Positions 1 through 4,688 of a DNA stretch of 64,000 nt are shown piece by piece. Position numbers and translations under genes: made by a program. Source of the stretch: Polymyxa betae A26-41 (taxonomy: Eukaryota; Protista; Endomyxa: Phytomyxea); the NCBI GenBank assembly GCA_003693705.1, contig RBZT01000588.1, forward strand, positions 62,001 through 126,000, in the 5' to 3' direction. Every line of letters begins with the position of its first letter. The first letter of the stretch is position 1. The notes under the pieces were generated by a model. The model was given only the letters and a program-made list of their open reading frames with translations. It did not search any database and was not told the origin of the DNA.

Positions 1-1136
1 CGGTTTTTGAATAGCACTCTTGTCACATTCGTATTACAGATCGGCAGCTGGACATAGCGGACCAACATTGGCATTAAGTTCGATTCGTTTTGAAACCTTC
101 GCTGGTTTGCCGATAAATCAGATCATCTGGCTGCCAAGTTTGGCATAGATCAAGAATCGAAGTTGTGCCGATTGCTAATGAAGGCTGTGCCCAAATGCGC
201 TCGAGTGTCTCTCAATGAATGCAGATTTTGTAATTTGTAGAGCAGAGACGAATTCTGCCGATCACCGGCGCGGGTAGGATCGGGGCTTCCACAATACAGA
301 CATAGGAACCCGGAGAGTAATCCCAACAGCCGAAAGCTTGCTGTATCGTGGATGTTTAAACTGAAAGCCAGTTATGAGCTGGTTTCCATTTGCTCAGGAA
401 AGCCGCAAATGGAATTGGATTCATTACGGGACGGGCGCCGATCAAGGAACACTCATCTGAATACGAATCGCGGAGCTGACCTTACTGCAACTACGAGGGG
501 GTTACTGGCATCGATGAGATACATTGCCGATCGAAATCAAAATCTCATCGGCTGGTCATTGGTTATATTGTCTGCGAAGACCAATGGGATTGACCCAATC
601 GGGTGTTGCCTTCTGAATCTTTATTGAAACCCAGAGCACTTCAGGTTCTAGAACCGTCTTTCTAGAGAACGACAAACAGGTTTTGGTCAAGTCACTCCCA
701 CCAACAATCGGAACTCTCCCGGATTCCAATAATCAAAGCCGTTCTCCAGCAAGCAATGGCTGATATAGGTATATATTGTGACGCAGCGAGCCATTCGATA
801 TTCGGTGCCTGAGGCGGAGTACATGTAGCCCCTGATGTATCTTCTTGTCGAATGCACTGAAATGTATTTTTAGATCAGCGCTGAAACCCGCCCCAACCAA
901 AACATATTAGAAATGGCCAACAAATTCGCAACTAAGCTGTACAGCTAGATCCCGAATGGGGCGCCATGTTTAGCGCTAGCGCGGCCTTTGCCTAAGTACA
1001 CAACCACTTGAAAGCAATCCCATTCGGCACTCCAGATTCAATACGAACATTTGTTGCTGTCAGTTAGCTGTTGGCTATTTTAGAAACCTGCTGGCTGCCA
1101 AAACGATCGCAATAAACAAGCTTGATCCTTTCGCTG

Positions 1137-4100
1137 ATGGAGCCATCCTCTGTCTGGTCCAAAACCCTTTCACAAGTTTGTTGTGAGGATGTTTGAACTT
1201 AATAACCTTGTTGATGAGTGGCATTAGTATTATGATGAAATACAAGAGGCTGCCAAGTTGGTGTTATCTCGTTTGGGAGAAGTCGATGTTGCTGTGGTGC
1301 TCGGAAGTGGGCTGAGCTCTTTCTCATCGAATTTATCTTCGACAAAGAAAGTTGCATACGAAGATATACCTCATATGCCTCGCACTACAGTTTCTGGTGG
1401 AGAGATCAAAATATTGTCAGCGCTGTATATTAACATTGTAAAGGACACGCTGGCGAGCTTATCTCTGGTCAATTACCGACAAAATCTGGGAACACCTTGA
1501 GGATTTTATGCTTCTCTGGGCGAGTTCACTGGTATGAAGGGTTTACTTTTGAACAGGTACGCCGTCGCTGAATATCTTTCCTCGTAATGCCAAAATCCAC
1601 CTTCAGGTTAACTTTCTAGTTAGACTGGCAGCTGCCTGCGGCTGTTCGTCGTATATTCTGACAAATAGTGCTGGTGGTGCGATTCCTCACATGAATCCCG
1701 GATCAGCGATGATTATAACAGATCACATTCGGTTCACTCGAATCGGTTTGTTTGTTTGTGCACATCCAATGTTTTCTGCTCACATTTTTCTGTTAAAGAT
1801 CCACTTCGGGACGTTGTTGCTGATCAACGCTTATGCCCTCCTAATCTTGAAAATGTCAGTGTCTGAATTGCTGATTCTAAATCTTACGGGTGATTCAGAC
1901 CGGCCTTTACAGTAATCGGCTCATCAAGTTAGCAAAAGAAGCAGCTGAGAAATTAGGGGAAACCGTCTACGAAGGCGTGTACTGCTGGTGTGGAGGGCCC
2001 ACTTATGAAACTCCAGCAGAGGTGAGATCGTATCATTAAGTTGTGGAAGGTTATCACTGCTGAGAATCTCGCAGGTCCAAGCTGCAATGCGAATGGGTGC
2101 AGACGCTTTTGGAATGAGGTACCGAATGCTGATATCCTCGTATCGTTGCGTGATAGCTGTTAGTACTGTGCCAGAAGTTGTAGCTGGTCGTGCAGTCGGT
2201 ATGGAAATCTTTGGCATTTCTCTATGCACCAACATGGCTTGTGGATTACAGCGTGATGAGAAGCTGGTAGAGTCATATGGTTATTGCTTTTAGTTATGCA
2301 TTACTCTCTCTTTCAGCTTCATGCTGACGTAGTGAGGGTTGCCAAAGAATCCGGGCCCCGTTTTGAGAGGCTACTTCTCGAATTTGTAATAGTTCTTCGA
2401 TTTGGTTTGGCATTGACCTAAACTATTACTGTAGTTTTACAACTTCGATCTTCCCTCCACATCTGGCAGTCTTGCTTCTCAAATAAGTCCTGAGCAGAAG
2501 GCGACCTTAGAGGACAGGCGAATCCTGCAGGTCCCAGGTTTTTGGGCCGGCTCGAGCGCCGTCAGTTCTGACGCTGCATGCCTGCAAAGAAATTTCCAAG
2601 AAGATTGCTATCGGATTGCGGTCTTTATTGACACCAGTTCAGAACCTGGATTAATTCCGAGCACACTTCCAAATGTTCAAGCGATCGGCTTCTCTGATCT
2701 TGCTGGGCTAGTTTCTGTCTCGCCGAGTGTTATCGGAAAAGGACGAATCTTATGTTTAAAGGGCAAACAGATTCTGGACGGGCAAAGCGACGTTTCCGTG
2801 TTGGTTGTTGAACATAATGCAAGCTTTGGGCCCATTCTCGGTATTTGTTTCTACGCTACAGGATCTGGTAACTCAGTGTACTCCTCAGATATTGAATCCC
2901 ATCACCTCGTTGGTGTCATGAGCCGATTGGGAATTCGTCGCGTCATTCAGGTTGTTACAGGACGAACTGAAACAGCTGCTGAGGGCTGGTTCAGTATCAC
3001 CGGAATAGTCGATCTGACAAGCGATAAAACCTATCCAGGTTTTGTGCCAGCCATCAAACGCTTAGGTCGTCTTTTCTTGACTTGATCAGTTCCCTTCCAG
3101 TTCTGAGAATCTACTAGATTCCAGTCTCTGTCAAAATCTGGCACCTGCATCGCTTTGCGTTTTTCCCGGGCCGACCTCACCATCGCCAACGGAAATCAAG
3201 CTGAGCGAACTGTTTGATTGTCCTTTGTATACTTGTACATCCCTGTCTCCAGCATATTCTGCTTTACAGTCAGGATTAGACTGTAGCGTCTTCGCTCGTG
3301 CTGGTTCATCAGCATCAACCGACACTTTTAAGACGATGTGTACAATATGTATGCCTTGCGAGATTTTAGGCTTCTTGATTGATCATACGCACAGTAAAAT
3401 CTGCTGTCATTCATAGCGAATCCCCTGTGAGATCAGCTTGGCAGTATGATGTCCCCCTTCTGCGATATCGCCAATCTGTTCAAGAAAAGGCTGCATTGGT
3501 TAATGCCGCAGCAGCTGAAATTAAAGGAGCAATTCTGACTGGAATCGATCAAGTTGAAATCGTTCTTGTAATCGATTCCCCATTGTTATCTATCGTATCG
3601 GACATCGCATGTATCCCCATCATAATATAGCCTTCCGTAACCCCTGACCGTTATTCAGGGCGCTCCAGTATTGCAGTTGAAAATGTGCAGGGCTGGCAAC
3701 AAGACTTAGGCAAAGATTGGAAACTCAGCCTTGGCGATTGGCCCAATGGGAAATCATTTTTATGCTTACATTCTTGCAGCCGAGACCGGAACTACAATCT
3801 CGTCCGTCTTTACGATGCAACGTTTGCCATTCGTGTGGGAGCCTGCACATGCTATATAGGAGCATTTAATAATTTTCTCTAGGTCTTCAAAGCGTTAAAT
3901 ATAGAGACCATTGTGTTCGTCGGGGCTGGTATTTCGGCTCACGAAAGCATCCCTGTGGGATCCGTTATTGGGGTTGGGGTCTTTCTAGTTTAAAAATCAA
4001 ATATTGACCACGTTTTCAGGTATCAGACCATGTGAATTGCTCAGGTGAAAATCCCCTTTTCGGACCCAACCAAGAACAACTTGGAACGCGTTTCCCAGAC

Positions 4101-4490
4101 TTGGCTGGAATGTACAGCGAAGTTCCATCGGTCCCTAATCACACAATTGTCGGCTATCTTCCTAATGTTTCGGCATTTAGCTCTAAATTCGCAGAACGCT
4201 TGGGATTTCAGGTCTGGGTGATGTTTGCGATTGCCTGTGTGTATACGATTTTCGAATCCCATAGGTTTATTGCTGCAATTTGATTCCCGAGACATTGGTT
4301 GCTCGTCATTCAAGCATGTCTATCTTCTCTCTATGCTGGATATATGGGTCATGTATATCTTACGAAAAGACAGAAATTAATGATTCCGTTCGCAAAGGTA
4401 AAACAATTCAGCTAATGAGATTTCATGTGCTTAGTAGTTCCCAGAAATAACAAACTCATTGAATTGTATATTGCGTTAATTGTAAGATAA
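1137..4490 (+). CDS. Multi-exon purine nucleoside phosphorylase (PNP) with three tandem PNP domains: domain 1 intact, domains 2 and 3 degenerate
   Basis: Domain 1 has VVLGSGL, GRVHWYEG, TNSAGG, GPTYETPAE, GMSTVPE and LCTNMA. Domain 2 has FPGPTSPSPTEI. Domain 3 has DHVNCSGENPLFGPN..LGTRFPDL and LIPETLVARH. Manually chosen GT-AG introns give phase-consistent joins; the 3' end is approximate. Confidence 0.85.
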
Positions 4491-4688
4491 TTTGATGCCT
4501 GGTTGCTATGCTCTATTGATAGTATGAGATGGTATGGATGTCAATGTTGCGAATAGCAAAGTATCCTTAATTTATCTGCAATAAAGCTCCTTTAAACGTT
4601 GAAGCTTCTGCATGCGTTATTTTAATGGATTACGAAAATAATACGGAGTGAACACGCCGGATCCTAATCACACTTCGCATGTGTAAAC

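Follow-up and report, generated by a model that had tools for sequence, protein, structure and literature searches.

A candidate single-chain pseudo-trimer of purine nucleoside phosphorylase in Polymyxa betae

Purine nucleoside phosphorylases (PNPs) of the trimeric class, such as the calf, human, Schistosoma mansoni and bacterial PunA-type enzymes, are ordinarily homotrimers of chains of approximately 30 kDa. In calf PNP, the loop formed by residues 141-168 of one subunit lies against residues 87-91 and 196-205 of its neighbour, and Asn137/Asn145 pair with Asn199/Glu205 across the interface (PMC9916683). [quoted passage not shown] Work that is summarised in the same study found that a Phe159Ala substitution barely alters the activity of human PNP (PMC9916683), so that packing, and not catalysis, may be the reason why Phe159 is conserved. 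The original prediction for the locus described here took each active site to be completed by the neighbouring subunit; Phe159 does come from the neighbour, but that wording overstates its part, since the chief role of the trimer is to maintain the shape of the site (PMC9916683). Because each subunit has its own site, the need of trimeric PNP for three subunits is an open question.

The nearest precedent for the layout that we describe is the single-chain dUTPase, in which tandem copies within a single polypeptide have taken the place of the subunits of a trimeric enzyme of nucleotide metabolism (PMC12524310). The dUTPase of Drosophila virilis is a pseudo-heterotrimer with three domains per chain, while the herpesvirus dUTPase is monomeric with two domains and has been left with a single site through the loss of motifs (PMC12524310). 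Our literature search found no paper on a tandem or single-chain PNP, on a three-domain PNP layout or on a plasmodiophorid PNP. Thus, the three-domain single-chain PNP layout is undescribed in the literature that we found.

The window, by which we mean the whole stretch of 64,000 nucleotides of Polymyxa betae DNA that was analysed, contains a gene for three PNP-derived domains, which we call D1, D2 and D3. D1 has the same full fold as the trimeric PNPs and all of their catalytic residues, and this fold is also the origin of D2 and D3. Whereas ordinary PNP consists of three identical chains, the sequence predicts a single chain made of three unequal copies, and one site of three would be able to work; the unequal copies, together with an altered donor loop in D1, speak against a homotrimer. 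The interface loop of D1 is changed relative to that of ordinary PNP, and only D3 still has the canonical one. The comparison with the dUTPases has its limits, as these have an unrelated fold and chemistry and the copies in D. virilis hardly differ from one another, in contrast to the two deeply degenerate copies found here. Long PNPs of Plasmodiophora brassicae, Acrasis, Leptophrys and Luapeleamoeba are orthologues with a collinear D1-D2-D3 order, and the P. brassicae gene additionally shares with the window the linker intron and an upstream G-alpha neighbour.

If the layout is as proposed, a natural PNP with one chain and one site would allow the roles of the neighbouring subunits to be probed directly through the loop with Phe159 and the contacts of Asn137/Asn145 with Glu205. 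Plasmodiophorids cannot be cultured. A search of the 27-Mb genome found no other PNP-like locus, so that the only PNP-like gene found there has a layout unlike that of the three-chain human and calf enzymes. Public records label the proteins of this type simply as PNP, and the annotation therefore hides their three-domain layout.

The transcript and its introns

The cDNA contigs and the sequence together define one gene on the + strand, which runs from position 1137 to approximately 4480 of the window and is interrupted by 17 short GT..AG introns. RNA evidence came from four small runs of one study, two of which were aligned over positions 1100-4600; 65% of the words of this stretch are present in the four runs, which is the share expected of a spliced mRNA. 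These two runs yielded one contig each, of 3262 and 3249 nt; both match the window exactly and show 16 GT..AG joints each. Introns in the region of the gene range from 44 to 53 nt. The joint across 3066-3117 was also seen in a second study, in a contig of 151 nt, and a raw poly(A) run (X10) contained no Polymyxa betae reads. The contigs begin at approximately 563-581 and end at approximately 4606-4611, which is 21-26 nt past an AATAAA signal. The 5' leader, which appears to be approximately 560 nt long, was placed on the basis that the 3262-nt contig has its position 614 at position 1228 of the window and is collinear over 1100-1175; an in-frame stop at 1113-1115 precedes the ATG of the D1 frame. 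The features of the transcript are as follows.

563-1136, + strand: 5' leader of the mRNA, its start taken from the extent of the cDNA
1137-1175, 1228-1396, 1444-1556, 1607-1745, 1799-1854, 1899-2021, 2075-2118, 2164-2266 and 2317-2385, + strand: exons of D1
1176-1227, 1397-1443, 1557-1606, 1746-1798, 1855-1898, 2022-2074 and 2119-2163, + strand: GT..AG introns of D1, seen as cDNA joints
2267-2316, + strand: GT..AG intron of D1, 50 nt, needed to join the D1 core to the C-terminal helix and retained in the cDNA contigs
2386-2434, + strand: linker intron, 49 nt, phase 0, the removal of which takes out TAA 2419-2421 and joins D1 to D2
2841-2888, 3066-3117 and 3349-3394, + strand: GT..AG introns of D2, seen as cDNA joints
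3611-3658, 3835-3882, 3973-4019 and 4212-4264, + strand: GT..AG introns of D3, seen as cDNA joints
4388-4434 or 4398-4444, + strand: last intron, 47 nt, two placements that fit the cDNA equally
4481-4611, + strand: 3' UTR, with AATAAA at 4580-4585 and the cDNA ends at approximately 4606-4611

The choice of the last intron places the stop of D3 at 4435-4437 or at 4478-4480, and the encoded chain comprises 822 or 836 amino acids when the intron at 2267-2316 is spliced.

The joint of the linker intron, 2385|2435, is present in both runs with a shorter flank of 224 nt, confirming a phase-0 intron that had been predicted at approximately 2387-2434 and setting its limits at 2386-2434. Because a splice unites two sides of one pre-mRNA, D1 and D2 share one transcript. 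As the contigs invariably have this intron removed, a complete D1 has to run on into D2 and D3. All three annotations of the P. brassicae gene likewise join D1 to D2 across an intron that has the same position and phase as that in the window and is also 49 nt long. Farther downstream, two of the predicted introns (3349-3394 and 3611-3658) were recovered as cDNA joints, whereas the one predicted at 3044-3089 was wrong: the cDNA joint places the real intron at 3066-3117, and an in-frame intron of 48 nt at 2841-2888 had been missed.

These joints bear on a reading in which the PNP mRNA stops after D1, and D2 and D3 are independent genes or the pseudogene remains of decaying duplicates. The frame would indeed stop at 2419-2421 if the linker intron were left unspliced, and the exons of D2 and D3 have no Pfam match, either of which could be taken in its favour. 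However, one RNA spans D1 to D3 in the cDNA contigs, with the TAA spliced out and with no contig covering the linker intron, which contradicts an mRNA that ends after D1. The D2 frame also lacks an ATG before approximately 2919, approximately 550 codons stay open across D2 and D3 through eight spliced introns, and orthologues of both domains have been kept in Rhizaria, Amoebozoa and Discoba. We therefore consider separate genes or decaying duplicates to be extremely improbable.

Three PNP-derived domains and their relatives

We assembled the joined protein model from the window sequence and used single exons as the queries for database searches. The domains and their diagnostic elements are as follows.

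1137-2385, + strand: D1, an intact trimeric-class PNP, recognised by cDNA joints, by PF01048 on its exons and by a bacterial PNP HMM
2435-3420, + strand: linker and D2, a strongly degenerate PNP-fold pseudo-domain, in exons 2435-2840, 2889-3065, 3118-3348 and the start of 3395-3610
3168-3194, + strand: D2 remnant GPTSPSPTE of the motif GPxYETPAE, in which Glu201 has become Pro and Gly-Pro 197-198 and Glu205 are kept
3421-4480, + strand: D3, a PNP pseudo-domain, in the rest of 3395-3610, in 3659-3834, 3883-3972, 4020-4211 and 4265-4387 or 4265-4397, and in the last short exon
4020-4118, + strand: D3 interface loop (calf PNP residues 134-166, DHVN..NPLFGPN..GTRFPD..Y), with the counterpart of Phe159; no other stretch of D3 is conserved as well

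D1 matches an HMM built from 30 bacterial PNPs over its full length with 278.8 bits, including the C-terminal helix of exon 2317-2385, and every motif that the original prediction had named for a full trimeric-class PNP is present. It is complete for the residues that bind phosphate, ribose and base, while D2 and D3 are incomplete; the catalytic set of D1 consists of Ser33, His64, Arg84, His86, Tyr88, Glu89, Asn115, Gly118, Tyr192, Glu201, Met219, Ser220, Thr242, Asn243 and His257. Pfam PF01048 (PNP_UDP_1) matched exons of D1 with 25, 29 and 13.5 bits against a cut-off of 25.1, such that only exon 1899-2021 (29 bits) passes. An HMM scan had been expected to return three PNP_UDP_1 matches. In the window, the matches fell on exons of D1 and none on those of D2 and D3; three PNP_UDP_1 stretches were found in the Luapeleamoeba protein and in the family member P0038, and two in five other members.

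D3 is also recognisable directly. The same bacterial HMM gives it 63.3 bits (E 1e-21), a Smith-Waterman comparison aligns it with D1 in register (z 14.2), and its exon 4020-4211 matches solved PNPs in the PDB with an E value of 2.5e-8 and is the best PNP match of the whole genome. As had been predicted, D3 keeps DHVN..NPLFGPN..GTRFPD and lacks GSG, RxH and GPxYE; GMS and TN are lost as well. Its interface loop is 67-69% identical to those of bacterial PNPs. Between the window and a GC-rich relative from a metagenome (locus L037, GC 69%), the D3 loop is 53% identical, as compared with 21-25% for the remainder of D3. The D1 loop is conserved less than the remainder of D1. A word search with the D3 loop exon returned no candidate in the length range searched.

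D2 is the most degenerate of the three, and by itself it gave no Pfam match and no PDB sequence match in the exon-level searches; pairwise Smith-Waterman comparison with D1 was not significant (z 0.2). Comparison by hhalign produced a weak full-length signal, with a score of 24.5 against a maximum of 21.2 among 120 shuffles. The relationship becomes clear through the relatives of the window protein. A D2 HMM built without the D2 of the window recognises the latter as a full-length family member (79.6 bits, E 1.2e-26), and the D2 family profile matches an independent bacterial PNP profile with an E value of 2.9e-21. On these profile comparisons, it is the family of orthologues that identifies D2 as a PNP copy. 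The predicted change of GPTYETPAE to GPTSPSPTE with loss of the base-binding Glu is borne out, with Pro in place of Glu201 in the window and a Pro at this position in 20 of the 21 D2 sequences of the family; Asn243 is lost as well.

Several other approaches to D2 were less informative. An exhaustive search of representatives with the first exon of D2 returned only P0001, a metagenome fragment and a relative with 31% identity, and P0002, which is a spurious repeat protein and was discarded. A resemblance of the N-terminus of P0001 to the C-terminal helix of D1 was rejected as not significant, 18% of shuffles scoring equally well. A MAFFT alignment of D1 and D2 that put D2 exons onto D1 was dropped as a basis for folding, and the ESM Atlas gave no usable match. 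The AF2 model of the first D2 exon has a pLDDT of 38. The D2 of L037 was modelled with a pLDDT of 73, and the top Foldseek matches of this model are PNPs; because its alignment contained PNPs, the model speaks for compatibility only and is not independent evidence.

We found the relatives by a word search that used a long bacterial ORF as a length carrier and then by a search with its best eukaryotic match. These searches yielded approximately 20 proteins of 650-1073 amino acids that have PF01048 as their only family, all with D1, D2 and D3. The named members are those of P. brassicae (PBRA_006724, with CEO98610.1, SPR00741.1 and XXQ38369.1 and three annotation versions of 799, 839 and 860 amino acids), Acrasis kona (KAL0482018.1), and Leptophrys vorax and Luapeleamoeba hula (both EukProt entries, with EP01087_P003654 for Luapeleamoeba); the others are metagenome ORFs. 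Family profiles match the independent bacterial PNP profile with E values of 4e-79 for D1 and 2.4e-37 for D3, in addition to that given above for D2. Family HMMs built without the window sequence recognise the domains of the window with 400 bits for D1 and 170 bits for D3, and each of the three matches, including that of D2, is full length and collinear. In L037, an uninterrupted ORF of 886 codons comprises D1, D2 and the start of D3, the remainder of which follows after one candidate intron; its D2 aligns with its own D1 in register (z 9.2). Identity between the window and P. brassicae is 68% for D1 and 27-33% for D2 and D3, and both species have a G-alpha gene upstream. Within the family, the window's D2 is the most degenerate, and the window's copy of the gene has a stop inside its retained intron.

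Thus, the D1-D2-D3 fusion is conserved across distant eukaryotes, in a family that spans Rhizaria, Amoebozoa and Discoba and includes free-living amoebae. Since the design has been kept in all three of these groups, it is an old and stable solution and not an accident of one parasite. The parasite angle of the original prediction is not sustained, as the same protein occurs in the free-living Leptophrys, Luapeleamoeba and Acrasis. Its proposal of three PNP-derived modules, one intact and two catalytically dead, agrees with the HMM scores, the family profiles and the residue conservation, and there is good support both for the fusion and for this combination of a live domain with two dead ones.

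A proposed intramolecular ring

Residue conservation among 21 family sequences differs between the three domains in a way that bears on how they might assemble. D1 keeps all of the catalytic residues, but its position 137 is Arg rather than Asn in 19 of the 21 sequences, and Phe159 is variable and not kept. The catalytic residues are gone from D3. Phe159 is present in D3 in one member besides the 15 in which this part of D3 is complete, and almost all of these members also keep Asp134, His135, Asn137 and Tyr166. D2 has also lost the catalytic residues and has Glu205 in every one of the 21 sequences, as well as Gly-Pro 197-198 in almost all of them.

We consider it likely that this plasmodiophorid PNP gene encodes one chain with three PNP-fold copies, in which D1 works and D2 and D3 replace the partner subunits in an intramolecular ring with one site. 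D1 would be the working enzyme that splits purine nucleosides with phosphate, and D2 and D3, having lost their catalytic residues, would stand in for the two partner subunits that keep the active site in shape. The ring and the order of the domain contacts are those judged most likely from residue conservation across the family. The domains would be arranged in chain order, with the long interface loop of each domain resting on the next. The loop of D3, which alone keeps Asn137, Asn145 and Phe159, would close onto the active-site face of D1, and the loop of D1, with its change of Asn137 to Arg, would meet the face of D2 that carries the invariant Glu205. A pseudo-trimer of this kind would fit the residue patterns and is the mechanism that they support best.

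The same fused chain could also exist without a ring, with D2 and D3 serving as regulatory, ligand-binding or partner-binding modules and D1 trimerising with the D1 of other chains. Dead enzyme domains often act as sensors. The faster evolution of D2 and D3, approximately twice that of D1 as judged from the identities to P. brassicae (27-33% versus 68%), could be read in this way, and the geometry of the ring is itself deduced from conservation. Nevertheless, D1 has lost the donor-loop residues that a D1-D1 interface would use, precisely these donor residues are kept by D3, and D2 keeps the acceptor Glu205. Every member of the family, moreover, has three copies, as many as the parent oligomer has subunits. 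We regard an assembly without a ring as possible but unlikely.

The retained intron at 2267-2316

The fused D1-D2-D3 frame is continuous only if the intron at 2267-2316 is spliced, as homology requires. The cDNA contigs, however, retain this intron. In both of them the piece 2162-2385 is collinear with the window and its depth is undiminished, whereas the other 16 introns are cleanly removed. A spliced joint for 2267-2316 is absent from every contig, and the contigs show only the commonest path. The intron itself has normal ends and a normal size. It holds a TAG at 2291-2293 in the D1 frame and an ATG at 2296-2298 in the downstream frame, so that retention yields an ORF of 270 amino acids (D1 without its C-terminal helix) and a separate ORF of 567-581 amino acids (the helix, D2 and D3). 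The orthologous intron of P. brassicae is 57 nt long, is in frame, contains no stop and has the same GTAGA donor; it is spliced in one of the three annotations and read through in the other two. As an in-frame intron there is read through, an insertion is tolerated at this site, and the intron may often be left in.

Retention might be the normal state, with a truncated D1 of 270 amino acids and a second chain that starts at ATG 2296 and takes in the helix as well as D2 and D3. These chains could assemble non-covalently, or retention could keep the enzyme off until splicing occurs. This would account for an intron that is retained in contigs of two runs while 16 others are removed, for the ATG that lies 2 nt downstream of the stop and opens the downstream frame, and for the read-through of the same site in two of the three P. 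brassicae annotations. A more specific form of this idea is a controlled unspliced intron, with the commonest mRNA leaving the cell without a complete enzyme or with one that is split by nature, and the splicing of 2267-2316 switching on the fused one-site pseudo-trimer. Since the P. brassicae annotations are ambiguous at the same intron position, such a switch could be shared, but we put it forward only tentatively and think it improbable.

Two separate chains are likewise doubtful as the normal product. Eukaryotic re-initiation behind an ORF of 270 codons is rare, and the chance that some ATG falls within 19 open codons is approximately one quarter. As the contigs report the commonest path, a spliced minority is possible. 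We infer that the fused chain is the actual product in Polymyxa betae. The P. brassicae intron, moreover, has no ATG, and the transcriptome assemblies of Leptophrys and Luapeleamoeba also contain shorter isoforms besides the full one. In L037 there is no intron at this position, and the frame runs straight through.

Upstream neighbour and 5' leader

In both P. betae and Plasmodiophora brassicae, a G-alpha gene lies directly 5' of the PNP gene and on the same strand; therefore, the gene order is conserved between the two species. The gap separating the two genes is approximately 1.5 kb in P. betae, compared with 345 nt in P. brassicae.

C621:60414-61590, same strand as the PNP gene and just upstream of it: G-alpha gene

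The PNP mRNA seems to carry a leader of approximately 560 nt (window 563-1136) ahead of the ATG at 1137, and inspection of both strands showed no convincing ORF there.

Short introns within the PNP reading frame

The second PNP domain (D2) of the P. betae gene is interrupted by a short intron that is itself in frame and free of stop codons.

Window 2841-2888: spliced intron, 48 nt

Reading through this intron adds 16 residues to the protein, among them a GSG that might be misread as the D2 phosphate-loop motif. The orthologous P. brassicae locus (L038, CDSF01000086.1) contains three short introns, each a stop-free multiple of three.

L038 2466-2522: intron, 57 nt
L038 3514-3576: intron, 63 nt
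L038 3643-3702: intron, 60 nt

Three public P. brassicae annotations differ on whether these introns are coding, which accounts for their protein lengths of 799, 839, and 860 aa.

Metagenome relative and other long PNP proteins

The gene call P0024, at the related metagenome locus L037, runs for approximately 100 codons in the wrong frame past the residues SWQ. Removal of a candidate intron restores the frame of the third domain (D3).

L037 6351-6454: candidate GT..AG intron, 104 nt

Sequencing error is a possible alternative to this intron, given a contig coverage of just 2.4x.

Word searches for long PNP relatives also returned many proteins (among P0006-P0023 and P0043-P0053) in which a PNP domain is joined to another nucleoside-salvage enzyme. 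The partners are cytidine deaminase (proteins of approximately 402 aa), a PF01676 metalloenzyme/phosphopentomutase-type domain (approximately 660 aa), thymidine-phosphorylase-type domains, and a nucleoside transporter.
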